64,000 nt of DNA from Anthoceros angustus (taxonomy: Eukaryota > Plantae > Anthocerotophyta): NCBI GenBank assembly GCA_010909165.1, contig MU008161.1, forward strand, positions 1,984,001-2,048,000, read 5' to 3'. Shown here one piece after another: positions 1-39,200 of the stretch. Every line of letters begins with the position of its first letter. Within the stretch, counting starts at the first letter, position 1. Both the position numbers and the translations under genes were made by a program. The notes beneath the pieces are model-generated. The model was not told the DNA's origin. It ran no database searches and worked only from the letters and a program-made list of their open reading frames with translations.

Positions 1-2333
1 TTGGTCTACACCTGGCTCTGTGGGTACCTCATCTGACGAGTTCCTAGGTTCAGACACATCTTGTCGTTTAGAACTTTCAAAATGGACAGCAATGTAGGAT
101 AAGTGAGACATCCACTGGTAGAAGGCCACTAATGAGCCACCTGTAGAGAGATGTCGAACGTCCAGCTTCCACTCTTGGGAAGACAGAACGCAGATGTCCC
201 TTAGAACACCACTTCTCATGAGCCACCCAAGAACTAGTGCTGCTCGTCGGAACCACCTGAACATCCACAGGGCATCGATAAGAGCAAAAAAGAAGACGAT
301 TCGGGTTTTCTCGTCATCCATCTCAAGTAGTGCAAGCATGTCCTTTACATTCTCTGCCACCTGTAGCAAGCCAAAAAACGAGCGATAAGGAATTCATTCA
401 GAACAGGAACACTCATTGGAGAACCAGGACCAGGATTGCAGACAATAGTGGACTAACCCAGGAGCTGATTGACAGGCTAGGCAGTTGAGGTACCTTATCG
501 TCACCCAAGACATCTGAAAGCAGAGACAGACAGGTGTGAACCAGCTTGCTCTCAAACTGCTGCAACATGTTTAGAAGGTGGTAGGTGTCCTCGTCATTTC
601 TGGATTTGGCACCTAGTGCTGAGAGAATCACGGCACATGTCACGATGGTTGGCTCATGACCCGCTGCCTTCATCTCAGCTAAGATATCTGCAGCCTTGTT
701 TAGTAGACCATCTTTTAGACAAGCATCGAGGGCCTCTGTAAAGGTTAATACATTACACAGCGATGGGGCCGCCTTCACGGAATCATACACACTGAGTACC
801 TGCACATTCGGAAAGCCATGCCACACCAAGTCAGCCATGCCACATTTGTCAAACCACTAACTTCAGAGCCACAAATATTAAGCATCAGATATCTCTCTTG
901 CAGAAAGTCCATTCACCTTCTCCACAGCACCAACTGCCTTGTAACAGGTCATCAGAGTTGTAAATGTGACAACATTAGGCTGCAAACCAGCTTTAGACAT
1001 CTTTTCCATGATCTGCTGTGCTCCAGAGGGGTTGCACTGATTGCAATACATATCCATCATGGCATTGAAAGTGGAAACAGTAGGCCGGAGTCCAAGTTCC
1101 TCCATTCCCTCAAAAATGCTCTCTGCTTCCTCAAAAAGACCCTGTTGTGTGCAACCAGCAATGAGAATACTGAAAGTGACAGCACTTGGGCGGCATCCTC
1201 TAGCCACCATCTGTCTGTAGACTTTTAATGCTTCACTGATATTCCCTACAAATGCAGAACAGCAGTAATAGATTAGTGGACCTTGAATGTGTGCCCGTAC
1301 AACCAGCCGCCAATGAACTTGATGCAGGAGGTTCATACCCAACATAAAGCTCACCAGCGCAAATATGTACTCTCATAAGTGAAGTGTATGTGACGACTGT
1401 TGGCTTCAACCCCTTCTTCCTCACAAGGTTAAAGAGGTTCACAGCTTCCTTCACATGCTTTCCGGCGACGCAAGCAGAAAGAAGTATGTTGTATGAAATG
1501 ATGTTTGGCTGGATCCCCTCTTCCACCATTTTCTTGAAGAGATGCAAAACACTGGCCAGCGATGTGCCAAGCTTTACACAAGTATCCATCATGATATGGT
1601 AGGTAACCTCATCCCGCTTACAAGGGAGATGCTCCATCTTCTGAAACAATTCAAGAGCTGCTTCCACCCGTCCTGACCTACTGCGAGCATCAAGCACCGC
1701 ATTGAGCAATTCCGTGTCAACCTTCACCTGCAAATCCTCCAAGCTTGAGTAGAGTTTCTCCACCCAATCCAAAGATCTGGGATGACCGAACATGTTGATC
1801 AGAGTTGTGTACAAGTGTGGATCTCTGGAAGCCAACCCCTGAAACTGCATCCAGCGGAAAACCTGCCATGCAATTTCGGGCAAACCTCTCTGCCCTAGAT
1901 CATGGACTACAGCATGCAATGTGCGTTGCAATCTCTCTTGATTATCTGGAGGGGCAACAACTTCAGCGTCCTGTGTCTCAGAATCAACGACTGTGCATTG
2001 ATCTATCCATCTGTGAAGCACATCATCTATAGAACCACCGTCTGGCAAGCTCAGAATCTGAGACACCAGCTTCTCCTTCGCCTCTTGTTTCAGACGCAGC
2101 TCCGCCTTGAATTCCTCAGAGTGGGATTTGACTAACTGGTCTTCAGGAGAACTGCTGTCACCGATCACAGCACCTGATGCCTCATCCGTGTACCTCCTGA
2201 CTCGAGCGTTGCCGAAGCCAGCAGACGGAAAACCATGTGGATTTCTGTGAGCTCTGAAAGCCTTGCAAATGCGGAACACCTGCACCCTGCCGCCACACCT
2301 CAATGCTGACAGCATGAAAGGCGGCAAGACCAT
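1..2333 (-). CDS. P-class pentatricopeptide repeat protein with C-terminal SMR (small MutS-related) domain; multi-exon, 3' end outside window
   Basis: ATG at 2333. Exons in ORFs 1233..2333, 878..1354 and 413..838 carry 35-aa PPR motifs (VTYHIMMDTCVKLG, ISYNILLSACVAGK, VTFSILIAGCTQQG, STFNAMMDMYCNQC). A further exon from ~361 downward reads ...SSQEWKLDVRHLSTGGSLVAFYQWMSHL, matching the plant SMR start LDxRxLSxG. GT-AG junctions seen. Confidence 0.88.
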
Positions 2334-2470
2334 CAGAAGCTGTCCAGATTCTGGTTCTCTCCGATTCCGAACACAACCGCCCTAATCCAGGACCACAAAA
2401 CACAACACCTTTACTGCATCGACTTCCTTCAAGTTTGAAACTTGCAGGTAACAGACACTTCGCATTGGCC
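2334..2470. promoter_or_regulatory. Putative bidirectional promoter/5' UTR region (137 bp between divergent ATGs)
   Basis: ATG of the PPR-SMR gene at 2333 (-) and the likely LPA3 ATG at 2471 (+). Confidence 0.5.
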
Positions 2471-4807
2471 ATGGCTCTCGATGCAAATGTGTGCTCTCTT
2501 CTCTCGTCCTTCTCAGGGACCCAACAGCAGCTGCAGTCTGCTCCTTTCTGCTGCTCTTTCAGACACTCAGCCTGGTCTGGCTCCACCTCTGCACTCCAGC
2601 AGGATGGACCAGGCAGGCGGGTCAGGTTGGCTGCTGCCCAAGGCAACTGCTACGGTGCTTCTTCCGGATTTGTGCGTGATGCTGGCTACTCCCCTGTTAG
2701 CTCGGCCAGGGCCAGCACGCAGCTGACTGACCCATTTCAAGGAGTTGCGGTGTACAAGCCATCGTCTTACGAGGTCATAGTCTCTGGTACGTGAGTGTCT
2801 TCAGGTTGGGATTACACATTCTGAGAGCAGAAAATTCCTTTCCCTCAGACAAGATTTACTCACCTGACCACCTGTGAATTTCAGATGCCGCGAGAGCACT
2901 TGGATATGCGCTGGATGACGGCAAGCTACGACTGGAGATAGAGTTTCCGTAAGTGGGCTTAGTTACCTGACTGTCATTTTACCACCCATCTGCTGGCCTT
3001 GGGTCTGGTATGGATGATGCTGATTGTGATCTCTTCATTTTGCAGTCCTTTGCCAAGCAGCGTGTCTGGGTATAAGGTGCAGTGAAGTCTTGGCCTTTTG
3101 GACATTTCTGTGCAAAACTCTTTCAGGTTTTTGCCGCATAGACCAGTTGTGTGTGGTGGGTGATGTTGAAGTCCTTGGGTGATCGCTGCTCACCTTTTGC
3201 TCATGTGGCACTTGTGCTCTGCTCTTCCAGGGAGCATCTGATGAGTTCATTGAGGCAAACATTCAATTAGCTATAGCTCTTGCTCGGAAGCTGCATGAAA
3301 GCAGGGGTACTGTATCGCAGCTAGTGAGTGTCACTCGGTTTTTGCATTTTTCCCAGAGCTTTGCCTCTGTGGCGGACTAGTATTCTACAGCCTTGACGTC
3401 CTTAATCTGTCATCGGAAGTAGGTGTTTCCTGACAAGCCAGAGAGGAGGCAAGCCTCAAGGACCTTTGGCTCTGCACTTGAGCTTGTGAGTATCAGCGCT
3501 GTCATATCTGTTATGTTGCGCAAGTCGATTGGCTCCCAACTTGAGCTCATTCATTCATGCCCATCCGTCCTGCTGCCTTCCGCTCAGACCAGTGGGATCA
3601 GCTTAGGAACTCTGGAAGATGCGCCAGGCAGTGGCAGCAAGGGTTTTTTGGCATCTATCCGAAATGCTTTGGACTTCGATTTTGGAGAGAACGTTGATGG
3701 TTGGTGCTCTCTGCCTTATTTATGCTCCCTTGTTTTCTGCTTCTGAAGGCCATGCTCAAGTTTACTTCTACACAGCGTTGGACCATAATTGCAGTCTGGT
3801 CGTCTTGCATCAGACAAGTTTCAAGCTGCGGAGCCTCCGTCCTTGTATATCATCATCAACTGCAGCACCACTGACCTGCCAGCGATTGAGCTGTTCACCG
3901 TAAGTTTGCCTTCCTACCTCAGCCTGAGCATATAAAAGCAGTCTAGCGATCTAACGAGGGTGTCTCGCTGACTACGCTGCAGAATACGTTGGGGTCGAGC
4001 ACTCCTGTTGTGTTGTTTAATCTGGAATTGGACACTTTAAGGTAGATATCTAGCCCACAAACTCCTTCTCCATAGTTCAGATTGCAGGTAGTAATCTTTC
4101 CAAATTGCTCTTATGTCATGCAGAGCAGATCTTGGTCTCTTCGGCTTTCCTGGGAAGGATATCCAATATCGCTTCCTGTCCCAATTTCTACCAGCGTTTT
4201 ACATCCGCAAGCGTGATTACTCCAAGGTACCAGACTCCTGCTGCAGCACAAGTGCGTCGTTCACCAAACTGACTCGGTCTCGTGGGTTCAGAGCATTGCC
4301 GTGGCACCGTTTATTCTGAACTACAGTGGTGTCCTGCTCCGACAGTATCCAGGTTCATCGATCAACTCGCTTCGATTGCAGTTCTGCCTGGTGGAAACAC
4401 CGGATGCTCACCTTTTCGTATGCAGGCCCATGGCAGGTCATGTTGCAACAGAATGATGGATCATATGCTTGTGTCTCTGAAGCCAAGGAGCGGTTCACGC
4501 TTGGTCAAGTGAGCAAAGTTGTATCTTCAAAGGATGTAGTCTGTCTGGTTCCCCATGAACGACGATGTATAACTCACAAGGTTTTTGGTAATGGCAGACT
4601 AAGGAGGAATTACTAACATCCATGGGACTGCAAGAAGAGGACCAAACTATGGCCTTTCTCAGAAGGGGCTACAAGGTTTGTACCGTCCTTGCCGTGGTGG
4701 AGTGACTTCGATCGAGCCGAACTGACGTCTGTTCCCCGTGGTGGCAGACATCGACATGGTGGGAAGATGATCTCAGCGAAGAAGAAAGCGCAGAATGGAG
4801 GAGGTAA
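2471..4807 (+). CDS. LPA3: LOW PSII ACCUMULATION 3 (DUF1995) chloroplast PSII assembly factor, multi-exon
   Basis: Spliced exons give [11 protein letters not shown]|[32 protein letters not shown]|[65 protein letters not shown] and [19 protein letters not shown] (TAA 4805-4807). N-terminus resembles a Ser/Ala-rich transit peptide. Confidence 0.9.
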
Positions 4808-5096
4808 TGATGTGAGCCTCCAGATATTTGTTTATGACACAAATAGCTGCTCCAGCCAGCTAGCCATCTACTACTGTCATCTATGAGAAGCCAATATGAA
4901 CTCCCAGTGGAAAGCCACTTCAGTAGTACACAGCTGTATTCAACATACACAGAATAACATATTTCCAGACTCTCTCAGTTGAAGCCGGCGGTGACCAGTA
5001 TCCCCCACGAAGAGATTAACCACGTTGCCAGAAACTTGAATGATGGTTAGAAAATTGAATGCAACCATCATGGATACATATGGCCCCTGAAATTAG

Positions 5097-6953
5097 TTAG
5101 TGTCCTCTGGTCATCTTGATCCTGGGCATGGATTTCTTCAATTGGCGAGCCCGTTGTTTTTCCTCCCGTTTCCGTAGGGCCTCAGGACTCAGGTGGACCT
5201 CCAGATCCTCCAGTGCTTTACGTCTCTCTTCCTTCTTTTTCAGAAGTGCTTCTTGTCGGGCACTTTCGGTCTCCTCCCTAACAATCTTCGACCTGACGTC
5301 CTCTGCTCGGCGGTGTGCCTGAACCCAGAGAATCACGCCTACACAGGTCAGACCCCGAAGTACTTGTCTTTGTAACTGGAACAACAAAACTCAACAAAAC
5401 CTCGCTACCAACCTCTTTGCTGAGCTTGAATCGGCCCACAACATCAATGAAGTAAGGTACAATAGCTATTAGGCGTGTCAGCTCTGTCAGCTCTTCTATT
5501 GGTGGGATGATGAACTTAAAATGGAGAACCTTTCTGTGTTGTCCTCCGGGATACTGATCTGAGAAATGCAACGAGACAAAATACTTGCCATGCTTCGCAA
5601 ACGCTTTCTCTCCGAACAACTGCAAGACAAAAGGCAACAGGTTCCGTTAGCACACCCCTAACATTCCACCAGCAGGCTCCCTTCCACTACGTACAACCTC
5701 AAAGCCTCAAAGTGAAGAACCTGATCAATGATTGCATCCTTCAAGAGATCAGAGGCGATCTCCCGAGATTCACTAATCACCGCCAGCTCGTCCGAAAGAC
5801 CCTTGCGCTGTGCAGAAGACGACAGAACGGTAGCAAGAAGCTGCAAGTCCCTGGCTTCCTTGTGCAAGGACTTGGCAAGCTTCCGCCGAGTGACGGCAAA
5901 CACAAAGGGCTCCATGCTCTCATCGTTCATGTTAACCTCAATCAAAAGCTCATCCTTCTTCGGACTGAGCACATACCACATCCTTGCAATCAGGTCATGC
6001 CGGGACTGCAGATCCATGGTGGCTAACAGCGACTGGCAGTATCTCCTCCCACTCGCATAGAACTTGAAGATGTTCTGGCCCTCCTTCAGCAGCAAAGGAG
6101 AATCCACTCCCTCTCCAGTTCCTAACAAACTAAAATTCTTGTCAAAAACGCTGTCCTTAGCTGCAAAAAGAGCTGCCCACTTCAGGGCAATGTCCTCGTT
6201 CATCTTCCTACCCATATAGTACGTGATTGCAAATACGGTCAGAAATGCTAGTACCGCAGCCTCCATTAAGTAGTACTGCGGGCCCTTGGGAGTGCTGCTT
6301 CCCCGAGCTATGCCACTGTCCTTCCCAGCAGTTTCCTCAGTCTTCACAACCTGCTCCTCCTTTTCCTCCTGCCTATGATCCGGAACCACCTGCTCCTCCA
6401 CAGGAAAGCCTTCAAACTCATCCTCATCCCACCATTCCTGCCGGAGCTTGTTGTCCACCACTGGAGCAGCCACACCTCCACTCGCAGCCTCTGCTCCTCT
6501 GTTGCCCAACATAACACATGAAAACGATACACAACGCAAAGATGAGCTTCAGCTGTGACGACCTGCATGAATACAGATGCCCAGCATCAACAGTCATCCC
6601 TACCTGGAGGGCACACCCGGAGCATCCTCCCCTTGCACTTCCTGCTGCTCTGCAGCGGCAGCAGGAGCTGGAGGCCCACGATCCGTCTCCAGCCCGCGAG
6701 GCTGCGGGACCGGCGGTGGCACCACTATGTGCAGCTCAGGCTCGTCCTCCACCTCTTCCACATCGTCGAATCCCTCGAACTCGGACGCTGCCTGCGCCGC
6801 CAGGATGAACGAGGAGGACCGAGCGATCTCCTGACCCAGCAACATCAGCACTGAAGCCAGCGCCAAGTACCACCACAGCCGCTCCACCGACAATCGGGGG
6901 AGCCATTGCTGCAGCGTCCCACGCCGCCGAACCATTCCCAGCAGCCTCAACAT
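5097..6953 (-). CDS. CCDC47: DUF1682 / CCDC47 (PAT complex subunit)-like ER membrane protein, 4 exons
   Basis: N-terminal hydrophobic signal, acidic WDEDEFEGF, a TM segment (YYLMEAAVLAFLTVFAITYYMG), LLKEGQNIFKFYASGRRYC, and a basic coiled-coil C-terminus ending KKSMPRIKMTRGH*. Confidence 0.85.
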
Positions 6954-7414: not shown

Positions 7415-9439
7415 ATGACCATGGAGTGCATTACTGGGATGGCCTTAGCTCCCGGCTCCGCTGCCTTGTCCTCCTCCGCTTTTAGCAGACAACGTTGGCA
7501 ACAAGCAATTGTGTTGAAGACCTTCCCACATTCGCTCCCGTTGCATGCCTTTCAGTCAGGTGGTGGAATTTAGTACACTGTACACATTTGGTACATTCTC
7601 CCCGGGCTGCTCCCGGATTTACCTTGATGGTTGAAATTACAGCTCTTGTAGGTCCTGCCAATGCACAAACATGGAGACCACGGGGGAGACGAGGTTTGGT
7701 CCATCTCCGATTTTTCTCTTCTGCTGACTACAGCTTGGCACATTCCTTGAATAGCTCCAGTGGTTGTTGCCCAGGAGGTACATGCTATGTCCCTTCTCGA
7801 GCTGTTCTGGCAAACGATTCTCCATCTGCAGGCACCAACTCGGACCTGGTGGGGTGCTGACCGGTTGACAAAAGCATGTTCATTCCTTTCCTCTCTCGGA
7901 TCAGACACACATTGGTAATGGGATTTCTCACTGTAGTACTTTGTCTTCTCCAGGTTGTTCCTGACAAGAGTGTTTCAGTCATACTGCTGGCGGGCGGCAA
8001 AGGCAAACGAATGGGGGTAAGTGTGACCGGATTCCCAGATTGTGTTGAATATGGCCCTTTTAGAGAGCAGGAAAGGAGTGCATGACATGGGTGGGGGTGC
8101 ATGAATGGCAGGCCAACATGCCAAAGCAGTATCTCCCTCTTCTGGGTCAACCGATTGCTCTGTACAGGTACTTCATGCCTGGAGTTGGGGCTCTTCTAAT
8201 CACTCCCTTGTGCCGTAGCTAGGAGATAGACCAATCTGACTAAGGTGAAGCTGCTGGGCAGCTTCTTCACATTCGCAGGCATGGCGGAGGTGAAGGAGGT
8301 GGTGGTAGTCTGTGACCCCTCATATCGTGACATCTTTGAAGGTATGCGTGTTTATCTTCCCTCTCTCCTGAACATGGCCTCTCCACTCTCATGCTGTACT
8401 CACAAGAATGCGCTTGCAGAAGCTGGCAAGGACATAACTGTTACCTTGAAGTTCGCTCTACCAGGGAAGGAAAGACAAGATTCTGTTGAAAGTGGATTGA
8501 AGGTTCAGAGACCACAGCATCCCATCCCTCAAGTCACTAAATCACCAAACTGCGTTTGTCTTACTTCTGTCCCCGTTCTCTGCAGGAAATCAGCCCGGGG
8601 TCAAGGCTGGCATGTGTGCACGATTCTGCACGGCCCCTTGTCCTTGCTTCAGACATCAAGAAGGTAGCCACCATACCAACCCATGTCTCCTTGTAAACGA
8701 AAACCACCCAGCGTTCCTATTGTGGAAAGGAGGTTCTGTTGATGTGAATCCAGGTACTGGGTGATGCCTTCATTCACGGAGCTGCTGTTCTTGGTGTGCC
8801 TGTAAAGGCCACAATAAAGGAGGTGACATTTATCGTTCCCACGCTTGTTTGCACTTAGTATCCTCTCCTCGTACTTTCTGCATCCAGCTTACTTCGGGTT
8901 GTTGTCTCCGCACAATCAACAGGCAACTGAAAAACAGTTTGTTGCGAAGACACTGGACAGACGAACTCTCTGGGAAATGCACACTCCTCAGGTACGATTT
9001 TCCGATGAGTCTTCCTACATCCGTCTGGCAGCTTTGGAAACTGAACCTAACTTCACCTCATCCGGCAGGTCATTGAACCAAGCCTGCTTCGGAGGGGATT
9101 TGAGCTTGTGAAAGAGTACGTGACTCTATCTTTGAGGTAAAGATTGAGATGGGGTTTCCTTTCTAACCATCATTTCCGGGTGATTTATTCAGGAAATCCT
9201 TGGAGGTGACTGACGATGTGTCCATCGTCGAGTATCTTAACCATCCAGTGTACATTACTCAAGGGTCTTACACAAATCTTAAGGTGATAATTGCAGGTCA
9301 CTTGAATCTGGTACTAAGGGGAAAATCTGGCAATGCCTATGGTGCTGATCCCTTTTGTTCACAGGTAACCACCCCCGACGACCTCATCGTGGCTGAACGA
9401 ATCCTTCACGGTGAAAGGGGCAAAGTGGCGGCCAGATAG
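7415..9439 (+). CDS. ISPD: 2-C-methyl-D-erythritol 4-phosphate cytidylyltransferase (MEP pathway), plastid-targeted, multi-exon
   Basis: Exons give [16 protein letters not shown]|[84 protein letters not shown] and YTNLK|[14 protein letters not shown]. All junctions checked are GT-AG. First in-frame ATG 7415 (alternative 7421). Confidence 0.95.
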
Positions 9440-9469: not shown

Positions 9470-10134
9470 ATACACGACGGCAATGTCCGTGCACGATTCG
9501 ACCAGAGACAAACAGAGGGCAGATCCAAATACTTTCAGGTCGATTGTATCCTTTAGACAGCCTAGAAAGTGGTGAACAAGAAGACTCGCGTTAAGACAAG
9601 AATCGCCCACTGCAGAATGTTACTGGTAGACCCCAGAGGCGATGTTACCTGCGCTGGAGCACAGATTCGGCAGTCTTCAAAGTTTCTTTCGCAGCACACA
9701 GAAATATCATTTGCAAGAACACTCACTTCTTTGCGCAACCGGAAACTGTCCTATGGTAATCTCACTAACAGCACCAGCAGCTGGATTTCCTGCTTCAAAT
9801 ACGCCAGTACCAGATTTCGCTTCTGCATCACATTGGCTAACTGATAAGCACCCACAGAGAAACATATCCTACTCTGATGCACAAATTAGCACTGTGACTG
9901 CATTTCCTTCTCTCCAAAGCTGCAACGATTGCAGAATTGCCTCAGATGAACGAGACAGAAAGGGTGCCAAACCTGATACAGCAGCCCCATCCTGTCAAAG
10001 CCACAGCAAGTCCTGGGCTCTATTTGCTCCAGGCTGCAGGTTGGGTTTGCAATCTCACGTGTCGGAGCGTAATGGAGTCAGATCCGATGCAGCAGCTACC
10101 AAGAACCATAGCTCATTGAGAACCAGATCTTGAA
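9470..10134 (-). pseudogene. Degenerate spliced coding remnant of unknown family
   Basis: Exon-like blocks bounded by AG/GT (10059-10134 QDLVLNELWFLVAAASDLTPLRSDT; 9973-9991; block from 9919 LWREGNAV). Downstream frames are interrupted by stops and no family was recognised. Confidence 0.25.
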
Positions 10135-10949
10135 CTGTTCAACGACAAAATTGCTATGAGAATTCTTGCTGGAACAGCAGCAGCAATGTGCATTGATATA
10201 GTGCCTCATCTACTAGAAAAGAAGCAGAGACTCGGTCGGTAGATTTTGACTCAGGCTGAGGTTTCAAATTTCCCTCTCGTGTGCTCACCTAAGACGTTTC
10301 AAATTTCCTTGAAACCACAAGCTACAGCTCTACAACTCCCTTCTTTCCTTCCTTATAACCTCCATGATCCATCACCTGTTCATCCACACAACGAGGCTGT
10401 GAGACGTTTCTCCTGTCAATTGCATGCGAGCCTGAACTTCAAAAAAAAAGGAGGAAAGGAGAAATGAGAAGACCCTAGTAGAACCAAACTGCTGAGCAGA
10501 TCGAAGAAATGACAAGACCCTAAAAGAAGCATGTGCTGCACCAACAGTGTCTAGCTGGAAACGATACCTCACAGTTGATTGAAGGCATTACAGGTAGGTT
10601 GCTTGTGATGGGCCCTGTTTTCACCAGAATATCGTCAAGAACTCGAGAAGAGATCCAAGTCGACCTCTGTCTCCAGCTCCTCCAGGTCGGTCCTCTTCCA
10701 TGCTTACAATCACTGTCAAACCTCTCCGTTTGCCTGCTCCTCTAGCGTGCGAGGCGCCGCGATGCTGCTGGCCAAGGACCCAGCTCCCATTCTGAATGTC
10801 GATCCGTGGAATTGTGAATGTTGAATCACTGGTTGTGATATTTGCAGGAATCCAGGCTGCTTCTTCGGATACTGTGGCCTTTGATAGGATAGGAGTTCAC
10901 GTTTGTGATCAACACACAAATGCCGCTTCGGTACGTTTGCTCAAGGCTG

Positions 10950-11620
10950 CAGGTTGGTTTTGCAGTCTCTCGTGTTGGAGCGTAATGGTGTCAACATGAA
11001 GGCTTCTGGAAGACGTTGTCTTGATTAGTTTGGTAACGGACTGCAGGAGCCGAAAGGGGATCCAACAATCCAAAAAAGGGACCCATCCTTAAAGTTTGAC
11101 CTATCCTTGGAATCTCTGAAAGATTCGTCTCCATGACTGGTGGAGAAAACAACGAGACAGTCGCTCGTAAAATGCAAGGGTCGAACTTTTCCGGCTCTCT
11201 TGCTCACGACTTGGCTCCCCTCAACGTCTGCGCCCTCGGCCTTCTTGCTTGCGATAAGGCTGCATGTGCCTCGACAAGCATTGATCACAAACACCTTGGG
11301 CTTCTTGGCCAGATAAGTGCATTCAGTGATGGGCTTCAAAATATCAACAACAACATAAAGCTTCTCCTGGCCTGTTCCACTTTACAATTATACTTGAGTC
11401 ATATATCTAGCCTCCTGAGAAATTACATACTGTAGATCTGCACATGCCGGACATCTAAAACAGCCTATCCACACACACGTAAATGAGATGTACGAACCTT
11501 GAAACTCGACCTCAGCTTTGGCCAGGTACTCTTTTCGCCCCAAGATGACATGACCATCAATCACGCTGGCACACTCTTTGTTGGCCTTCAAAATAAGTGG
11601 CTTGCCTTGAGCGTTGTCGG
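10950..11620 (-). pseudogene. Caspase-like (clan CD, peptidase C14A-type) p20+p10 domain, frame-disrupted
   Basis: ECTYLAKKPKVFVINACRG (Cys codon 11276-11274). p10-like SDCLVVFSTSHGDESFRDSKD..GSLF at 11165-11073. Upstream QYVIS-CA-GGA-GGC at 11420-11410 becomes SHGG with one added base. Beta1-like QGKPLILKANKE at ~11610. Confidence 0.75.
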
Positions 11621-12574
11621 AGATATCTGCCCAAAACTAAGCGTAGTGTGCATAACCCCTTTCTTTCACGGCAATCACCTTTTTGACGAGCTCATCTGCC
11701 AGGATACACTGGCTTTCCCTGTATCTATAGCGTGAGGGATTCTACACATTCACATCTAAGAACACCTTCAACGAGTGTAACCCCTGGACAACCCTCATAC
11801 GAAGCACAAAATGCACGAATCTGGGGCGTGATATATTCATGCAACAACAATTCAGATCTCAAATAGCCTTCAGCTGATCAGACTAAGATATCTAAGTGGC
11901 AATCTATTTAGGCATTTAATTCCACAAAGATATCAAGAAATCCTGCAGATATGAAAGTCGAGTTGGCTCGCAATTTTGACTATCAGGCTTGGAACCATAA
12001 TTATGGAATAACATCCATTATCGATCTCAAGAAAAAACAATGTAAGTAGTTAGTAACAAGAAAGCATAATATCATCAAGGTTTGAGCATGAAAGACGAGA
12101 GAAACGATGTGGCTAAAGCATTCTTATATACGTGCAAACGAGAGAAAAATCCTAGCGTTCGGGCACGCTAGTTTTCAATCAACTCCTAAATGTGTCTCCT
12201 TCTCCATATGCTCATATGGGTATAAAATAGCGCACTTCACCTCCTTTAACACTATTTTCAAAACAAAGGTGTAATTCAAGCATCAAGTGGATGAATTGTT
12301 CCTCACTTCCAATGGTCATACCAAGCCCAACCTTGCCCAAAGATATTTCTAGAAGCTGCCTCAAGTTGAACCCATCTTTGCTGATAAACCCATTTAGAAG
12401 TTGAAGCCGATCTTTTCATGTTGCGGTTCACCAAAAACTCTCATTCCTAACCACTAGAGGTCTACCACCATAAGATCCGACTGCTTGAAATATATAATCC
12501 CCCCCCGAATCCTTGAGGTATGATGCTACTACTTCCCAAATATCATCTTTTTCAATGAAATCCATGAGAAATAT

Positions 12575-13805
12575 TTCGACCCCAAGAAATATAAGTTTAC
12601 GTTCCAGGAGATCGAATATCTGGACCATGAGATTGTGCCAGGAGGCATCATGCCACAGTTGGCTAAGATTCAAGCAGTGATACAGATGCCAAGACTCAAG
12701 GATATGGCCTCACTGCGGGCATTTCTGGGGTTGGTCAACTATTACCGTAGGTTCATGAAGAACCTTAGGTCGATTTGCAAACCTCTATATGTGATGTTGA
12801 AGAAGGAGGCTACATGGCACTGGGATCAAGACCAGGAATTGGCTTGGCAAGATCTGAGGGATCAGCTGGCGGAGAAGCCCATGTTACTCAGACCCGATTT
12901 TGAGGCCCCATTTGTGCTACATACCGACTAAAGCATTGCAGGCATAGGCACAATCTTATCACAAGTCGATGCAGAAGGGACAGAGCGTGTTGTGGCATAT
13001 GCCAGCATATCTAACAATTCAGCGAAGGTGAATTACTCCTCGTATGAGGGTGAGTGCTTGGCTGAATTCAGCATGAGCATGCCTTCAAATGTCTCATGCC
13101 GATTCTGCGAGATTTCAAGTGCATCCACACTGTCTTCTACAGCCATTAGAGCCACGAACAGACTAGGCACTGCCTTCCCTCGGCCAGTGTCCTATCAAAC
13201 TCCAGTAACATCACTATTATCCTGTAAGGATTGCGACTGAGGGCATCTGCGTTGTGGTAGACCTTCCCTGCCCTGTGAATGATCTCCATATCATATTCAA
13301 ACAACATGAGCGCCCACCTGGCCAACTTGCCACCAACTTCATGTTGCTCATGAGCCAATGAAGTGGTTGATGATCAGTTACCAACTGGAATCTTCGACCA
13401 AACAAATACACTCGAGAGTGCAGCACTGCCCAAGAATGGTGAGTGGAAGGACAGAAGAATGTGTGGAGACTACCGACCACTGAACAAGGTTACACCAATG
13501 GAAAGGTATCGATGCTAACGCACGAGATCTTCGGCCGCGATTTGCAAGGCGTATTTCACTACATTGGATTTCCGCCCGGGATTCAACCAGATTGTCATAG
13601 TAGAGCAGGATAAGTGCAAGTCGGCATTTTGGGGCAAGGATCAATTGAAAGTGAGAATCCATGCCCTTTGGTCCAAGAATGCTTCTATATATGTCTAGCG
13701 AGTTGTTGATCTGGAACTATGGGGACTGTCGTTTGTTCGATGCTACATTGATGACATCTTCGTCTTCAGTGAAACACTAGAGGACCACCTGGAGCATCTA
13801 TAGAC
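12575..13805 (+). mobile_element. Rearranged Ty3/gypsy pol fragment (RT-C/RNase H-N on +, RNase H-C inverted on -, RT-N on +)
   Basis: LRAFLGLVNYYRRF...PFVLHTD*SIAGIGTILSQ...VVAYAS...YEGECLA (+). WAVLHSRVYLFGRRFQLVTDHQPL / KLARWAL / ADALSR (-, ~13064-13432). RRMCGDYRPLN...LDFRSGFNQI...MPFG...YIDDIFVF (+). Confidence 0.9.
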
Positions 13806-16800
13806 ATAATATTAATCCGTCACGTCATCAATCCGGTGTTTTAAATAAGCACCCGAAAGAGTGCCACATCATCCAACTAGAAAACCCCGTTGTGAACCGA
13901 GTCTTAAAACTTGCCATCATGAAACTTAAACCAATTTACGGAGGTTTTAGATGTTTGTAAAGATTGGGACATTTGCAATTTTGTAAAACACCCTCTCCCT
14001 AGTAGTAATTACTAGATTGTCTAAGTCGATTGAGTAATCTTGTGAGATGAGTGGAATCAGAATGCCGTGTTGCATGTGTCAAACAACGCAATAAACTTAT
14101 CCATGAAAATGATTGGCATACCTTATTGTGTTGCCCATCTTGATTGATGAATAAATATGTTCTGCTTTCTCTATGCCTTAGCACTTGAATGCCTAAACAA
14201 AATAAGAGTTCTCGACAGGATGTCATAGAGAAACTCTTTGCAAGCATTAATCTAGTATCTTCTCGGATAGCCTAGGAATTAGACATAAGACTTTATCATC
14301 GTAGACACCTAGCACTATAAAATGATTATTATATCATTTGATGTAAATGTTGCTATTTGAGTTTAACCTAGAAAAACCTAGGGACTTCAAGCTAATTTAA
14401 AATACCACTTCATGGCGCTTTGCTTGAGTCCATATAAGGACTTTAATAGTTTGCTGGCATTATACTTTTTTTATCTTTAACTTATATACCCTCGTGTATT
14501 TCCGTATAAATTGTGTGGTCGAGGTCACCATATACGAAAGCTATTTTAACATCTAATTGGATGAGCTCATAATCGTGATGAGAAGCCAAAGCTATGAGGA
14601 TCCTTAATGAGGTTATTTTTAGTACATGGCTAAGAGTCTCATCATAATCGAAACCATATTTTGTGAATAACCTTTAGGAATTAATCGACTTTATATCTTT
14701 GTATACCGTCATCCGCATTTAATTTAATTCGATGGTCCATTTAAAACCTACAAGTTTTACATTTTAGTGGTAAGGTGGTTAGTGTCCAAGTTTTGTTAGC
14801 TTTCAAGGAATCTAATTTTGACCTTATTGCTTTCTTCCAATTTTCTCTTCATGCACATGTGATGGCCTCTTGATACTTGTGCCAAAATATTCTTAGGGTC
14901 CCATTAGTAGGGGAATATCTATTAATTTTACTTGCGTTAGAATGTTGAAGAAGGAGGCTACATGGCAATCGGATCAAGACCAGAATTGGCTTGGCAAGAT
15001 CCGAGGATCACCGCTGAAGCCCATGTTACTCGTAACCCGATTTTGAGGCCCCATTTGTGCTACATACCGACTAAAGCAGTGCATAGGCACAATCTTATCA
15101 CAAGTCGATGCAGAAGGGACAGCGTGTTGTGGCATATGCCAAGATATCTAACAACAAGGTGAATTACTCCGTGATGAGGGTGAGTGCTTGAATTCAAGCA
15201 TGAGCATGCCTTCAAATGTCTCATGCCGATTGCGAGATTTCAAGTGCATCCACACTGCTCTCTCACCATTAGAGCCACGACTAGGCACTTCCCTCGCCGG
15301 TCCTATCAAACTCCAGTAACATCACTATTATCCTGTAAGGATTGCGACTGAGGGCATCTGCGTTGTGGTAGACCTTCCCTGCCCTGTGAATGATCTCCAT
15401 ATCATATTCAAACAACATGAGCGCCCACCTGGCCAACTTGCCACCAACTTCATGTTGCTCATGAGCCAATGAAGTGGTTGATGATCAGTTACCAACTGGA
15501 ATCTTCGACCAAACAAATACACTCGAGAGTGCAGCACTGCCCAAGAATGGTGAGTGGAAGGACAGAAGAATGTGTGGAGACTACCGACCACTGAACAAGG
15601 TTACACCAATGGAAAGGTATCTGATGCTAACGCCAGACGAGATCTTCGACGCGATTTGCAAGGCGAAGTATTTCACTACATTGGATTTCCGCTCGGGATT
15701 CAACCAGATTGTCATAGTAGAGCAGGATAAGTGCAAGTCGGCATTTTGGGGCAAGGATCAATTGTGAAAGTGAGAATCCATGCCCTTTGGTCTGAAGAAT
15801 GCTTCTATATATGTCTAGCGAGTTGTTGATCTGGAACTATGGGGACTGTCGTTTGTTCGATGCTACATTGATGACATCTTCGTCTTCAGTGAAACACTAG
15901 AGGACCACCTGGAGCATCTATAGACATAATATTAATCCGTCACGTCATCAATCCGGTGTTTTAAATAAGCACCCGAAAGAGTGCCACATCATCCAACTAG
16001 AAAACCCCGTTGTGAACCGAGTCTTAAAACTTGCCACATCAGCGAAACTTAAACCAATTTACAGCGGAGGTTTTTAGATGCTGTAAAGATTGGGACATTT
16101 GCAATTTTGTAAAACACCCCTCTCCCTAGTAGTAATTGCTGACGAGATTGTCTAAGTCAGGATTGAGTAATCTTGTGAGATGAGTGGAATCTGTAATGCC
16201 GTGTTGCATGTGTGCTGAAACAACGCAATAAACTTATCCATGAAAATGATTGGCATACCTTATTGTGTTGCCCATCTTCGATTGATGAATAAATATGTTC
16301 TGCTTTCTCTATGCCTTAGCACTTGAATGCCTAAACAAAATAAGAGTTCTCGACAGGATGTCATAGAGAAACTCTTTGCAAGCATTAATCTAGTATCTTC
16401 TCGGATAGCCTAGGAATTAGACATAAGACTTTATCATCGACGTAGACACCTAGCACTATAAAATGATTATTATATCATTTGATGTAAATGTTGCTATTTG
16501 AGTTTAACCTAGAAAAACCTAGGGACTTCAAGCTAATTTAAAATACCACTTCATGGCGCTTTGCTTGAGTCCATATAAGGACTTTAATAGTTTGCTGGCA
16601 TTATACTTTTTTTATCTTTAACTTATATACCCTCGTGTATTTCCGTATAAATTGTGTGGTCGAGGTCACCATATACGAAAGCTATTTTAACATCTAATTG
16701 GATGAGCTCATAATCGTGATGAGAAGCCAAAGCTATGAGGATCCTTAATGAGGTTATTTTTAGTACATGGCTAAGAGTCTCATCATAATCGAAACCATAT

Positions 16801-19524: not shown

Positions 19525-20075
19525 AGATAGGCGATGCTAGGCGATGCCAGGCGATGCTAGCGTGCTAGGCGATGCCAGCGATGCCAGGCGATGCTAGATG
19601 CTAGGTGCTAGGTGCTAGGTGACGCTAGCGATGCCAGGCGATGCCAGGCGCTAGGCGATGCTAGGCGACGCTAGCAGGCGATTTGTGCAGGCCAAGGCCA
19701 AGAGGAGGAGGCAAGGCCAAGGAGGAGGAGGCAAGCCCAAGGCCAAGGAGAGGAGGCTGAAGAAGGCCAAGGAGACTCAAGTCCAAGGCCAAGGAGAGGA
19801 GGAGAAGAAGCCCAAGTCCAAGGCCAAGGAGAGGAAGAAGCCCAAGTCCAAGGCCAAGGAGAGGAGGCGAAGAAGCCCAAGTCCAAGGCCAAGGAGAGGA
19901 GGCGAAGAAGCCCAAGTCCAAGGCCAAGGAGAGGAGGCGAAGCCCAAGTCCAAGGCCAAGGAGAGGAGGCGAAGAAGCCCAAGTCCAAGGCCAAGGAGAG
20001 GAGGCAAGAAGTCCAAGGCCAAGGCCAAGGCCAAGGAGAGGAGGCAAGAAGAAGAAGCCTACCAAGGAGAGGAAT
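19525..20075. repeat. Short tandem arrays: ~10 bp GGCGATGCYA units, then ~40 bp CAAGGCCAAGGAGAGGAGG..GAAGAAGCCCAAGTC units
   Basis: Periodicity directly visible. These arrays produce the low-complexity shadow ORFs at 19658-20183. Confidence 0.95.
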
Positions 20076-20599
20076 GAGGCCTCCACAGGGGCTGGCCTTT
20101 AAGGCCAACCAACCAAGGGAGAAACAAGAGTATTTTACTCTTGGGCCCTGGATTCCAAGGGATAAGGGGAAGCGGATAGACATGGGTATGTCATCAGTCC
20201 ATTTGATTTCACTTTCTGTCCAAAAGTCCTAGTCGGCACCCCATCCAGGTACTGATCCACCCACGGTGCTTAACTCTGAGTTCCTATGCCTTTGCTATCC
20301 AACTCACCCAGCTCACATTTTTGATATAGCCTGCAGAGTATTTGTATGTGATTTTAACATGCATAGATACTTAGAGGTTTCACTAATCACGATCTAAGAT
20401 AGCGGGTGTGTTAACCTTGATTAAGGGTTTGATCTAGCCACTAACCGCCTGGAGTGCATGCTCGACACACTCGATCCGGACGGAGCTACCAACCAGAAGT
20501 CCATCGAGCGAATTCAAGTCCCGACCAAGAGGAGAAGTAACACCTCGATTTTGGTACCACCAAGGACGCGGAGGAACCCAAATGACACAATCAACAATC

Positions 20600-31797: not shown

Positions 31798-33266
31798 ATT
31801 GGGACTTGTAGGAGGCAACAGAGCAACCATTATAGACGCTAGGGGGGCTACTTTGCATAATGGTATGATCAAAACACTAGCATTGAACAATGTAAACATA
31901 TGCTCAACATCACTAAGTACTCACTTACTTCATCTGACATGAACCAAAAATTAAAAAGGGACAATTAGAAGCAAACTAGTGAACAGGAAAGGAGAAATGA
32001 GAAGGATAAATGAGAAGATCCTATTAAAACTTTTAGTTTGTTGCAAGAGCAGTGTCTTGCTAGAAAGATACACTTGGTTGAAAGCATTACAGGTTGGTTA
32101 CTTTTGATGGGCCCTTGGGTTTCGAAATTTGAGAGTGAATGTTTCTCATTAAGCTCTACGTGCCTATATGTCTACATAGGTATCCAAGATTATTTTTTTC
32201 TTTTTCTAATGAATGTAATCTTGCACAAAAGAGCTATTCGAGGGAGTTCAAAGCATCATATTTACGGTATTTTGAATTAATTCATGAAGAACTATTAGAG
32301 GGAGTTCAACGCATCATAGTAACGAAGATTCGGTATTTTGAATTAATTCATATATATTTTATGATACAAAGAATATTTTTAAGTTTTTTATGCGTGCATT
32401 CTTGTGCCATAATTAGCAAATCAGGAACTCCCATCTCGCTCATCATTCCTATTTAAAATTGGATTTCCAGGCTCTTCTTATAGCACCAAGGGCATCACTC
32501 CCTCTAGGCACCCCATCTAAATACGGATCGAAGCACAAGATGCTTAACAACCACATTGTTATAAATGCGTAGATGTACACATATGTACTTGTTTCCCACG
32601 GTCGCCATGTGTTGCTTGTCCCGCTTTGCCTTGATTGCACCCTGAGGGGTATAGGAGGCTCTTTCCCACACTTGCATTATTGGTACTCTATTGGCATTGC
32701 TGGCTCTGCATAGGGTGCTGGAAGCTCTTTCCCACACTTGCATTATTGGTGTTCTGTTAGCATTGCTGTAAATGCAGCCCGGGTTTCCCTTTTTTCTGAA
32801 TTCAATATAATGCAACTCGCCTTGCACTTCACACAATGGCTCATCGAGCAAAATTGCCCAAGATATTGTGCTTGCTGCCTACTGTATGCATCAGAACGAA
32901 TACTGGAAACGGTAATATGTTGTCATTATGTAGTCATTGTGCTGAATGTAAGAAAACACAAAACATAGGTACATATGTGTTAAAATGTAGATACATATTT
33001 GTTGATATGGGAAACGAGTTGAAGCGAAAAGGTACAATGAGAGTCATAATGGGCCGCGAGTTACGGAACGGGGCACGGCTGTGAGCTGGTGGAGGCAGTC
33101 CGTTGGAGGCAACGGCAATGGACGGGTTTGAAACGGGAGAGGGAGACGGTGCGAGGGTGACAGAACCCTCTCCCCGCCAAAGGTGCGTCTTGAAGTGGGC
33201 AGCTGTGGCCATGGCGCCTGGCGTGAGGCAGCGAGCGTGATCGACGCCAGCATCGCGCCCGAGAGG

Positions 33267-36200
33267 ATGTCGACCATGGTCGGAGTGCGAGGGGCGCCCG
33301 CCATGGCGCCGGAGCCGGAGGCCAGGACCGGGGCCGTGTCGGGAATGCACGATGGCATCATTCAGACCCCCAGCGCCTTCTACGCCGGCGGCAGCAGCAA
33401 CCCTTCTTCCCGCATCTGGGGCGCCTCTCCCCCGCCGGCCTTCTTCCGGGTCGGCGATCCCGCCGGCCCCTTCGCGGCGCCCGCAGAATCGTCGGATTCC
33501 TCCTACGCCACAGCTCCCGTCTCCTTCGCCTCGGGCTGGAGCGGGGCCAGAAGCCACAGGAAGAGTGCAGTGTCTGCAGTGCCTCCAGGTCCTGCTGTCC
33601 CTGCGGTTCCTGCGGTGCCGGCGGTTCCCGCTTCTGCATCCTCCGCGGGCGCCTCTTCTACATTTGTGTCAGCTTCTTCTTCATCCTCGTTCCAGTCCTT
33701 CTCCTCGCCAACCTCTGCATTTTCCTCACCTGCAGCCGTCTCGTCCTCTGCTCCCGCAGTGGGATCTGGATCCAGCGGATCTGAGGCGGCCATGGCCAAG
33801 GGCGCCAGGAGGCAGGCGGGATGGCGGGATTCGGGGCCTTCCGCCCGCGCGCCGGCTGGATTCCGCGCCGGCCAGGAGCAGGAAGGTGCGTCTGGTGAGG
33901 AAGCTGCGTCCGGGAGGCACAAGGCTGTGTTGCAGAATTCCGGCAAGGCGAGTTTCAAAAATTCTATGAAGGGGGAGTCCTGGAATTCCTCGGATTTGCG
34001 CACGGCAGAGGCCGGGTTCAGGTTCCAGTCCGGGAGCATGAAGGGGTCCGGGGAATCCTCGGCGAGTTCTGGCGACGCCGGGTTTAGGTTTGGTGCGGAT
34101 AACGCTGCTGCCTCTGCTGGAAGTGGGGGTGGGTTTAGGTTTGGAGCGAGAGTTGCTGCGGATGAGTTTCGGGCCTCGGGTACCGCTCCCATGGCATTTT
34201 CTTCCCAATCGGAATCATCGGTTTTGAGTGGTTTGAGTCGGTTGGATTTGAATTCGGAGACCGCTGCTTCTGGAGTGAAAGCAGGAGCAGGTCGGGAAAG
34301 TGTCTTCTCCCGTGATGTGTTTGGCAGGGGGAAAGTGGAGCACGGGGTGGGATCTGTGAGACAGAATGCTGATGTCGGTACATTGCCACGGGCTGACTCT
34401 CAGTCACCTGGGTTGAAGTATGGTGTCGAGCCACTTACGGAGAGTAACAGAGTGAGCTCCAAGTTTAATCGGGGGACCCCGTTGCCAGGTGATACTGCTG
34501 CAGATGATGCAATGGAAAGTTCCAGTAGCAATGCTTCGAAGTTTGGGCAACAAGGGTTTTCGAAGGAGGAGGTCAGCAGCGGGCAGTCTAGGTTCCAGGT
34601 TGAGAATGCTGGACAATCCCCGGATGCGCCTCATGCTGACATTTCTGGTAGAAGTAATGGTAGGTTCAAGCTGGGCAGTGGTGCAGCAGCTATTACTCAT
34701 AAGCAATCTGCACCGGATTACGTTTCACCAAATGCCAAGTTTGCTGAATTCACGGGTGAGACATTGCGGGGGGTAGGAGACCAAGAGAATTTTAGACCCA
34801 GGGGTAATGGGAGGACTCTTGATCGAGAGCCCTTATTTTCTTTTGAGGGGAGGTCTTTTCCTGCTGCCTTTCTGAAGACTGGCAATGCCAGTGCCGGGCT
34901 CGCATCTCCAGCTTCTTCGAATGAGGGGTCGTCTCCTGTTTTTGTTTTTGGAGCTACTCCAGGAGGACGTGCAGGAACCTCACAGGTTGAGGAGACAGAT
35001 GCTTCAAGGTTGCCTCGAGGACTCTTGAAACAGAGGAGGAGATCCTTTTCAACGAAGGCGAAAGGCTCGGCTTCGTCGGGTCATACCTCTGTTCCTTTTG
35101 GAGATGTTACTTCTCCAGCAACATCCAGTGTGGCGCAAGGGGAGGCTTCCTTGGCTGGTGCAGCGTTTGATTTCCAGCAAGCTGCAGACATTTTTTTCAG
35201 GGCAGGGCCTGTTCAGGGCTCTGGTGAAATTCCCAGCGGTGTGGAGCCTGCACATGGAGCCAGCCCTCCCAAAAGTCCCACTGGAGAGCCTCAGTCTGCT
35301 GATGTCCCAAGTCCTACTGTTGGAGGGGCGGATGGGTTATCACCTCCGCAGCAGGTTGGTACAACAAACTGGAATGCAGTTTTTGCAGGCGTGTGCAATC
35401 TGTTCAAACAATCGTTCTCACTCCATGATAATGCTGAACAGGGAGGCTTCAGTGGCGCAACATCTCCACCTCTGCCTCCAATGGAGCCTTTACTTTTCAG
35501 CTTTCAATCATTGGGTTTGTCAGGTCCAGTGTCTGAAGGGAATGCTGGTGCCAACTCTTGCCCTTTCGTTTTCGGTGCCACCAAAGCTGTGCCTGTGGAA
35601 AGTCAGCAACAAGCGAGTGCTGTGAAAAGGAAGAAAGGAAAACTGCATCAGTCCTCCAGCCGAAAGTCTGGAAAGTCTCCTTCTTTGAATGCCAAGCAAG
35701 GCTCCACAACCAGTTCTGATGACCGATCTCCCTCACCCATGGATTTCTCACCGCGAAATGAAGAGGACATGGAACAACAAGATGGATTAGGGGCTCTTCT
35801 CTCAGCTGCGGCTAACCTTAGCATTGGTAAAGATAGCAGTCCAGAGAATGCCAGTGCAGAACAGGAACCCGCTGAGGGGAAGGGTGGAATAGAGAATGAT
35901 GGCTCGACTGTTGCTGGTAAAAGTGGAAAGTCAAAAAGGTCCTCTTCGGATAGCAGCTCTTTGTCAGAAGATGGTGAGGGAAGTGCTAATTCACCTGAGA
36001 GTGATGGAGGAAGCTCTAACTGGTCTGGCTTTGTTTTTTCTGCCAGCCCTTTGCATCCAGCTTCGGGTGTGCAAAGGCGGATTGTTCGTAAGTCATATCG
36101 TGAAAAAGGCCCTGAGATGAGGAGATTTGTGAGTGTCAAAGGGCATAGAGAGTTATCTTCTGGCACGGGTACCTCATTGTCAGCAGGTCAAGCAATTGCT

Positions 36201-39200
36201 GAAGATTTAGGGTCAAGGTTACACATATCTGATAGACACGCTGGTACCAGTCCAAGAGCTACAGAGGTAGATGGCTCATTGAGAAGCTCCGGTATCCCTG
36301 AGAGCCAGAACATAAAAGCCCCTCAAAATGGTGGAAATCCATACAGGGCAGAAGCAAGGGTGGAGTCACTAGCAACACCTGCGAGCCCCAGGGCTGCAGT
36401 AGCTGTAGCAGCTGAGCAGGCCTGTGAAAAATGGAGATTGAGGTATGTCTACCTGAGCAAAAAGGTTTTGTTTCGACCACTGGTCAGTTTATTTGGCGGA
36501 GCAGTGCTGCTTTGTCCATATGTAGCTTGCAAATGTGGGTAAGAACTACTGGTAATGGAGTGCAGGGGCAACCAGGCTTATGAGAGTGGAGATTTTTCTA
36601 AAGCAGAGGAGTACTATTCTCGCGGTGCTGGCAGTGTCTCTTCGCATATGACGTCGCAAAGCTGTGTCCGAGCTTTGATGCTCTGCTACAGCAACAGGGC
36701 TGCGACTAGAATGGCCATTGGAAGAATGAGGGATGCCATTGGGGACTGTATCCGTGCTATGTCTGTGGATCCCAACTTCTTACGCGTGAGGCTACGGCTG
36801 GCTAAGTAAGTGAGCAATGATGGTTTTGGTCTGGTGGACTGAAGTGCCCAAAGACTGCAGGTCTGTTAAGAGGGTTTTCATGTAGAAGTTGTACTAGTGC
36901 AGGGTAGTCATTGGTTATTGGAGCTTGTTAGAAACTCATCTTTGTGTTTGCATCCAGCTGCCATTTGTCTCTAGGAGAAACGGAAGCGGCTTCAGCTGCA
37001 TTCAAGGAGTGTTTGAAGCGAGTAAAGGAAGGAGACCATGTTCTAGACTCAAAGATTGCAGCAGAGGCTGCAGAAGGGTTGAAGAAATCACAGGTATCCG
37101 TCAAAATCAGGCAGGCCTCCTTACAGAAAGCTTGTGTGTTTTACCGGATGTACCAGTTGTGGCAACCCTGATGGATAAAAGGCTTCAGCGGGAAACACTT
37201 TTTTGAAGCTTGTGATGAGCTTGAAAAAGTTTGAGTTGAGCTTCTAAGATTTTGAGCTGGTGGTCAATGACATGTCTCTTCTTGTGAAATTCAGGTTGTA
37301 CAGGAGTACACTGACCGGGCATTGGAGCTTTTGAAGACCTTGAATGTGGCAGATCAAACAAATGCTCTGCGATTGGTGACGGAAGCATTAAAACACAGCC
37401 AATATGCAGACAAGTTGGTGGAACTGAAAGCCATTGCTCTACTTTTGGTATGTTGAGTATGAAAGTAGTGCCATCACGTGTATCATGAGACCTGTAGCAT
37501 GTGTCAGTTTTGATGTTTTCCAGCAAAGCATCTGACTGCACCAAATCTGGCCAACAGTTGAGGAAGTACGAGGACGCTGAGCAGCTCTGTGAGCAGACTC
37601 TTGTTGCGGCAGAGCGAAACTATCCTATGTTGGATGCGCCAAAGAACAGTAACAGTGAATCCTCTCCTGGGCAGCCGTACAATATTTGGAGGTGGAAAGT
37701 TGTTGCTAAATGTAAGTACCATCTTGGGAAACTGGAGGAATCTCTAGAGTACCTGCAGAGGATAGAGAAATTTACGCCTGCTTTCAGTGACAGGTAAGCC
37801 CTCTCTGAAGTCTCTGCTCTTGCTTGTCATCACTCACAGTTTCTGGGGTTCAGCTTCAGCCAATAGCTCTGAACAATTGCTATTTGAAAGCTTTTATTGA
37901 ATTAGTTTGCTATATAGCAGTCTCCAGTTTGGCTAGTTTCATGAATGCTTCTGTGTATGAGCATTTAAAGACGTTGTGTAACTGGACAAGTCTGAAACCT
38001 TAGCATTGGAAGCAACCTGTTTTGCAGGCTGGATTTCTGGCAGATTTTGGACATCAAATCTCCCCAGAGTTCAACGATTCGCAATCTTTTGCAATATAAG
38101 GTTCGCCTGCTTGAAACTGTGGTCCTTGGGATACAGCAGAACTGGACGTCAAAGTTGTTGTCTATTGTTTACATTGCTGATATAATGTTTTTATTCATCC
38201 ACAGGCTGCAGGTAATGAAGCTTTCCAAGCTAACAGACATGCAGATGCAGTGGAACAGTACACTGCTGCGCTAGCTTGCAGTGGGGACTCCCGCCCATTC
38301 AATGCTGTCTGTTTATGCAATCGAGCCGCAGCCTCACAGGCGCTAGGGCACATTGCAGATGCGATTGCAGATTGCAGCAGGGCAATAGCCCTTGACCCGA
38401 AGTATGCAAAGGTTTGTGTAGCCCTCTTCCTTTTTACTTGCCTCACTTTTCTCAAGCATGAGTCTAATCTGGACTCATGCTTGAGGATACTAGCTGATGG
38501 ATGCTTGAAGCATATGAGTCAGTTGATTGCTGTTCGTCGAGCATGAGTCTCTGAACCCCGAAGTATGCAAAGGTTTGTGTAGCCCTCTTCCTTTTTACTT
38601 GCCTCACTTTTCTCAAGCATGAGTCTAATTTGGGCTCGTGCTTGAGGATACTAGCTGATGGATGCTTGAAGCGTATGAGTCAGTTGATTGCTGTTCGTCG
38701 AGCATGAGTCTCTGAACCAAGACCAAGACTGAAGCCTACGATGTGTGCAGGCCATTTCAAGGAGGGCGACTTTGCATGAGCTTGTGCGGGATTACTCTCA
38801 GTCGGTCAGTGATCTGCAACGGCTGATTTCTCTGCTTGAAAGCCAGAAGCTGCATGGTAAGGGCAACCACGGGGGTAAGCCGAAATCAACCAACGGTGGC
38901 CAGGACCTACATCAAGCCCGTGAAAGGTTGGCTAAAGCGGACGAAGAAATCAGGACGAAAAAGAAGGATCACCCTCTGGACCACTATCTGATTCTGTAAG
39001 TCAACCTCTTAAGCATCTGAGGTGAAATTGAGAGGGGTGATGCCATGTTCAGGGTGGTGATGCATGCTTCTGGAATGCAGTGGGGTTGAGAAAGTCAGCA
39101 CTAATGGCGAGATCAAGAAGGCATACCGGAAAGCAGCTTTGAGGCATCATCCTGACAAGGTATGTCTGCTCCGATTTCGCCCTTCACCTCATCATCCGTA

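Follow-up and report, generated by a model that had tools for sequence, protein, structure and literature searches.

Within a 64,000-nucleotide stretch of the Anthoceros angustus genome (the window), we found on the minus strand a broken caspase-type locus that is very probably a fossil: a plant gene for a caspase-type protein like the full-length hornwort P0155, now dead, tandemly duplicated and with both copies since decayed. One copy (copy A) is colinear with P0155 (412 aa) from 11841 to about 10910-10950, and a second, partial copy (copy B) is indicated downstream of it. Both the pre-domain that precedes the caspase core of copy A and the whole of copy B lie beyond what an initial annotation of this DNA had described.

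The caspase-like strings to which that annotation had pointed, ECTYLAKKPKVFVINACRG and SDCLVVFSTSHGDESFRDSKD..GSLF, are indeed present on the minus strand in one stop-to-stop open reading frame (ORF) of 118 codons (11028-11381), which forms the Cys/p10 core of copy A and in which both KPKVFVINACRG and FSTSHGDESFRD are read, with DCLVVFSTSHGDESFRDSKD following KPKVFVINACRG after a linker. A profile search bore out the proposed domain, matching this ORF to Pfam PF00656 (Peptidase_C14) at 38.0 bits (E = 1.9e-9; cut-off 21.4 bits) over profile positions 109-183 of 233 only. The Cys codon (11274-11276) lies in the pentapeptide N-A-C-R-G (INACRG), such that the Cys, Arg and Gly of Q-A-C-x-G are retained and Gln is replaced by Asn, likewise across the plant clade described below. 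The S1-pocket arginine of the p10 motif, which had been read as kept, is present as the Arg of S-F-R (codon 11115-11117), and in an alignment with procaspase-3 the relic core matches both the Cys of xACRG and the Arg of S-x-R. When the core was searched against sequences of solved structures, the best 60 distinct sequences listed were all caspases (insect caspase-1, caspase-3, caspase-6), with E = 2e-4 for PDB caspase-3 and insect caspases, and there was no metacaspase among these 60. We also scored the core with a plant-family HMM, built from caspase-type ORFs linked to NB-ARC-LRR ORFs, and obtained 80.8 bits (E = 1.2e-23 among the 2963 ORF pieces of the window). The caspase-type core is thus a genuine observation, far beyond chance.

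Metacaspases (C14B) carry a D-x-C-H-S-G Cys motif, a Y/F-S-G-H-G His motif and an acidic S1 pocket, whereas caspases proper (C14A) carry their His in S-H-G about 45-50 residues before the Cys and draw their S1 arginines from an R-x-G loop and from the S-x-R of p10. Neither the metacaspase D-x-C-H-S-G motif nor the metacaspase His motif was found in the relic, and by its motifs we read the domain as caspase-type and not metacaspase-type, in agreement with the initial annotation.

To place the relic among known proteins, we used phmmer, which needs no word index, against 1.84 billion representative proteins and obtained 19 matches, of which the best 10 were identified. These were caspase-type proteins of animals (mite, fish, mollusc and insect) alongside a single hornwort transcript, the plant-type Logan proteins P0006 and P0009 and one unnamed sequence, with no metacaspase, MALT1 paracaspase or bacterial protein among these best 10 of 19; the highest identity among them (46%) belonged to the hornwort transcript, from Nothoceros aenigmaticus. 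P0006 and P0009 are part of a family of 230-380-residue C14 proteins that share INACRG, and the next matches of the plant-family profile are vertebrate caspase-8 and caspase-22 (E about 1e-31). The profile search also recovered P0155 itself, whose Pfam C14 match reaches 110 bits. Across the relic core, identity is 39-46% to hornwort P0155 and P0003, compared with 31-42% for the animal matches.

The hornwort transcripts P0155, P0156, P0003 and P0157 (Nothoceros aenigmaticus, EukProt) are colinear with the relic over pre-domain, core and tail, and share with it INACRG, F-S-T...S-F-R-D and an N-terminal CAS-x-EGCPGV. Unlike copy A, they have unbroken ORFs in which both the His (VNAHGD) and the RPG loop are preserved, and P0155 and P0003 additionally carry between His and Cys a long acidic or basic insert that is absent from the relic. 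In a frameshift-aware alignment, P0155 scores 294 against copy A, compared with 73-101 against shuffled DNA.

Followed from N- to C-terminus on the minus strand, copy A begins with a pre-domain motif (IRAFCASYEGCPGV...) at 11746-11841, in an ORF that has no ATG and runs into a stop at 11727-11725; here P0155 residues 12-36 match 11820-11746 at 64% identity (tblastn, E = 1e-4). The motif IRAFCASYEGCPGV... is conserved better than the caspase domain proper, and the pre-domain as a whole belongs to no Pfam family and is modelled with low confidence. The remaining pre-domain continues in a different frame (11570-11745), colinear with P0155 residues ~40-97, and contains GKPLILKANKE (11574-11609) and an in-frame TAG (11639-11637). 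The string QGKPLILKANKE, previously assigned to strand beta1, is colinear instead with pre-domain residues 83-93 of P0155, and the true beta1 matches 10773-10648 in copy B. Next comes a shortened and degraded N-half of the caspase domain (11380-11569), from which beta1 and the RxG loop are missing and whose likeness to the family is by eye only, with no Pfam, tblastn or HMM match; within it, a possible beta3/His-site remnant (11380-11433), again recognised by eye, reads TVCNFSGG*IYDSSIIVK, with its TAG at 11409-11407, and an alternative frame across the His region meets TAA at 11390 and 11384. The core follows, with P0155 residues 262-354 matching 11360-11091 at 39% identity (tblastn), and beyond it the frame must change within a T6 run (11075-11080), the T-run that had been flagged at ~11075, to reach the C-terminal helix. 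The tail itself (10909-11073; …VDTITLQHERLQ…AAFVC*) lies in this shifted frame and shows weak homology, matching P0155 'VLDIMTRMNDKV' by eye. Colinearity with P0155 agrees with the earlier remark that the domain can be read without introns, and argues that the gene behind copy A is of the stand-alone hornwort type, intronless throughout.

The damage to copy A is larger than the two frameshifts and two stops previously counted. Stops interrupt the homologous frames at 11727, 11639 and 11027, and additionally at 11409 or at 11390/11384 depending on the frame, and the reading frame shifts at least four times (near 11741-11746, at ~11440-11495, near 11379 and in the T6 run); a path that does no more than avoid stops would already need about six frame switches within 930 nt. 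P0155 residues 102-121, 129-159 and 181-197 have no counterpart in copy A, and the lost parts include the R-x-G loop, which supplies one S1 arginine and which at this locus is present only in the copy B fragment. Reconstruction through the breaks, as had been proposed, gained nothing in our hands: a read-through of copy A with X at every break added no score beyond the core with either plant or animal HMMs. Pfam returned no family for the ORFs at 11388-11591 (N-half) and 11725-11862 (N-terminal) or for 10624-10896, and the exact product of the 104-aa ORF is not on record in public assemblies.

The catalytic His was an element that a single inserted base had been thought to restore. The underlying DNA string GTAATTTCTCAGGAGGCTAG is present (11426-11407), but the histidine of VIS(H)GG requires an invented base, and at the aligned position (11433-11407) none of the frames, which read ISQEA or FSGG*, contains a His codon. 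By eye, the uninterrupted TVCNFSGG*IYDSSIIVK resembles the family's FVCFVSAHG...SSFIL better than VIS(H)GG does. Since the uninterrupted frame fits the family motif better and no frame holds a His codon, the catalytic His looks lost, and not masked by a one-base error.

We considered whether copy A could instead be a working caspase-type gene whose breaks are consensus errors of the assembly, a reading that gains some appeal from the open 118-codon core, with its Cys and S1 Arg kept, and from the fact that one of the needed frame changes falls inside the T6 homopolymer, a prone spot for a single-base assembly indel. We judge it improbable. At least three of the breaks are nonsense codons in homologous frames, which are substitutions and not indels, and about 70 residues of the N-half are gone, the RxG loop and the His among them; such nonsense substitutions, lost segments and a lost start codon are not hallmarks of homopolymer indel errors, and the number of frame switches and the failure of the X read-through to gain profile score weigh in the same direction. 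The flanking genes point the same way. CCDC47 (5100-6911, minus) is intact, with ~1.5 kb of coding sequence that aligns to plant orthologues with zero frameshifts and best named matches in whisk fern (Psilotum), a lycophyte and liverworts (53-56% identity). The neighbouring PPR gene (413-2333, minus) is seemingly split over three frames, and we examined its breaks (838-1354) as candidate assembly indels; we rejected this, as the same three pieces recur in a Logan contig (L008) from another, fairly distant species, identifying the breaks as introns and not errors. The CCDC47 and PPR pair (413-6911, minus) is syntenic with this contig at 48-68% protein identity, in a comparison limited to the CCDC47/PPR side, as L008 ends 1.1 kb short of the caspase side. 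Since both genes are free of such damage and another species shares the exon pattern, the breaks in the relic are unlikely to stem from assembly error alone. Of the two explanations put forward earlier, pseudogene or consensus error, it is the first that fits the stops, the missing segments and the absent ATG, and we regard the locus as most likely a genuine, non-functional pseudogene.

Downstream of the C-terminus of copy A, we located a segment of a second copy, which comprises a beta1 strand and an R-P-G...D loop (RRGLTVIVSMEEDRPGGAGDRGRL) on the minus strand (10648-10773; RPG motif at 10678-10692). P0155 residues 100-142 match 10773-10648 at 44% identity (tblastn, E = 2.4e-6), and the family HMM detects this piece at E = 0.007 among all ORF pieces of the window. 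In addition, a 58-nt block at the end of copy A (10936-10993) recurs, 90% identical, 913 nt away (10023-10080). Taken together, the 43-residue beta1 match and the repeated 58-nt block indicate that a second tandem copy, B, is partly preserved here. In its middle (10648-10080) this copy shows no significant caspase similarity, with a Smith-Waterman score within the shuffle range, and in a frameshift-aware alignment of copy B the beta1 piece alone stands out.

We infer the following history for the locus. An ancestral gene of the P0155 kind, with a short N-terminal pre-domain, one Peptidase_C14 domain and no introns, would have lain between IspD and the present-day retrotransposon, and would have undergone a tandem duplication with a unit of ~913 nt, after which both copies decayed. 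Copy A would have retained its pre-domain and Cys/p10 core, losing the start codon, the beta1/RxG loop and the His and gaining stops and frameshifts; copy B would have been reduced to the recognisable beta1/RPG segment and the C-terminal 58-nt block. No protease would be produced from the locus.

The 58-nt block has sharp edges and is 90% identical between copies A and B, the remainder of which cannot be aligned as DNA, a pattern at odds with simple uniform decay. Rfam returned nothing for the block, folding gave no significant RNA structure, and its 29-nt core found no match in a metagenome scan. The block may be a tract that live paralogues donated by gene conversion, or else a site that small RNAs target across the family.

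On one side of the relic is the 3' end of IspD, whose exons (7861-9436, plus; PF01128 on 9167-9436) converge on it to within 0.6 kb; on the other, upstream of it, are Ty3/gypsy-type RT/RNase H fragments (12431 upward, including 12524-13237, plus; Pfam RT_RNaseH and RT_RNaseH_2). CCDC47 is 3-4 kb away. GC content across the locus is continuous with the flanks. These surroundings confirm the previously noted ISPD and transposable elements, together with the argument against contamination drawn from them: the relic sits in genuine plant DNA, and contamination is no viable reading. Elsewhere in the window, two identical 90-codon ORFs (13220-13489 and 15331-15600, minus) lie 2.1 kb apart and are a duplicated transposable-element segment (possibly LTRs or nested copies), several frames are open on both strands across low-complexity Lys/Glu/Arg/Gly/Gln-rich repeats (19655-20230), and no Pfam family matches the longest ORF (33183-36542, plus; 1119 codons) at E = 0.01.

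The abundance of transposable elements in the window, with RT/RNase H fragments beginning ~570 nt upstream of the relic, raises the alternative of a gene fragment captured by such an element, for instance as Pack-MULE or Helitron cargo. This we consider very unlikely, as no terminal inverted or direct repeats flank 9.9-11.9 kb, the relic spans an entire gene from first residues to C-terminus instead of a fragment, and no third copy of the 58-nt block occurs in the window.

To address the origin of the domain, we built a maximum-likelihood tree of plant sequences and sampled animal caspases, unrooted and with no metacaspase, paracaspase or orthocaspase outgroup. The relic core falls within the plant clade, which branches with SH-aLRT support of 100 separate from the sampled animal caspases, and its terminal branch is very long (1.89, against a median of 0.2). 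In this unrooted tree, the sampled effector and initiator caspases of animals are likewise joined by a supported branch that leaves out the plant clade. The initial annotation had offered two origins, acquisition from an animal or animal virus and an unrecognised plant lineage, and the second is the better of the two, with plant relatives closest and the relic nested in a plant clade. Horizontal transfer in recent times, with an animal or animal virus as donor, or else an animal contaminant or chimeric contig, might be suggested by the best non-plant sequence and structure matches being animal caspases, and by reviews that place caspases in animals only (PMC5756287, PMC10896300). We nevertheless hold this to be highly improbable: plant sequences are the most similar (39-46% identity over the core, 64% over the pre-domain), ahead of animal matches at 31-42%, the starred branch of the tree lies between plant and sampled animal sequences, and the relic has decayed in place close to IspD and CCDC47 with no break in GC. 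Because plant sequences are its closest relatives, recent animal or viral transfer at this locus is not supported. The plant caspase-type lineage may equally stem from a transfer in the distant past, received by an early ancestor of plants, or from long vertical inheritance in which seed plants lost the gene.

The relic itself is too broken to fold, and the fold could be assessed for its intact homologue P0155. An AlphaFold model of P0155, whose input alignment included animal caspases, has pLDDT mostly above 88 across the domain, and among solved structures it most resembles caspase-3, -7, -8 and -9 (Foldseek E = 1e-15; VIA Z 25.3-25.5; 24-27% identity), with MALT1 (Z 21.7), AtMC4 (18.5), AtMC9 (17.8) and legumain (17.3) ranked lower by VIA. 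Plant metacaspases (C14B) and the MALT1 paracaspase do share the clan CD caspase-hemoglobinase fold and the Pfam family with the relic's family, but with 12-18% identity to the P0155 model and lower Z than the caspases. Animal caspases (MEROPS C14A; caspase-3, -7, -8 and -9 and insect caspase-1) resemble the relic in having xACRG after a KPK-hydrophobic strand, the S-x-R Arg and a p20-linker-p10 order. Compared with them, the relic carries Asn for the Gln of QACRG and resides in a plant genome, the plant type has a novel short pre-domain in place of a CARD or DED, and copy A in particular is without the His, the RxG loop, a start codon and an open frame. The C14 fold is shared as well by bacterial orthocaspases and by caspase-like domains of bacterial NLR-like proteins, and bacterial C14 domains fused to STAND NTPases are known (PMC10952240). 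A search for the family motif in 185,579 prokaryotic genomes found no relative, and plasmids gave no match.

Within the same plant clade and with the same motifs as the relic, we also found caspase-type ORFs (P0006, P0009, P0144-P0154) directly upstream of NB-ARC-LRR ORFs, unlike the relic, whose window contains no NB-ARC or hydrolase partner genes. On plant-like genomic contigs (metagenome, Logan), INACRG ORFs precede NB-ARC-LRR ORFs of the same orientation by 190-280 nt and are arranged in tandem arrays, on contigs L005 (10001-13710 and 15719-20789), L004 (10001-13596 and 14712-19931), L001 (591-6749) and L003 (139-5984). Some of these arrays have a 240-260-aa hydrolase-like ORF ('FHGYEFG') between the C14 and NB-ARC-LRR ORFs, and the C14 ORF of L005 ends in AG|GTAAGT, a canonical splice donor. 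Each pair probably represents one NLR gene whose N-terminal domain is caspase-type, an architecture (caspase-type-NB-ARC-LRR) that is not listed in a survey of NLRs (PMC11218826).

Reviews confine caspases to animals and describe plants as having metacaspases only (PMC5756287, PMC10896300, PMC12521494), and in the literature we found no description of caspase-type proteins in hornworts, bryophytes or plant NLRs. By itself, the locus adds one non-functional member to an established kind of protease and is no discovery; its value is as evidence. Lying between plant housekeeping genes and decayed in place, the relic is clean evidence of the family's residence, and its colinearity with the hornwort transcripts amid plant genes identifies those transcripts as plant genes and not animal contaminants. 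It is evidence that the caspase-type family is endogenous to the plant genome and undergoes turnover through duplication and loss, having been resident long enough to duplicate and die. More broadly, we lean, if only somewhat, towards a view in which non-seed land plants possess old, endogenous true caspase-type proteases (C14A-like, with INACRG), undescribed in the literature searched, whose turnover, like that of immune genes, would proceed through tandem duplication followed by decay, and which would occur either stand-alone or, in other plants, N-terminal to NB-ARC-LRR receptors; the present locus would be one fossil of this family, and its 58-nt block perhaps a trace of gene conversion or a small-RNA target. 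Together, these results support the claim that some land plants possess caspase-type proteases, possibly wired to immune receptors.
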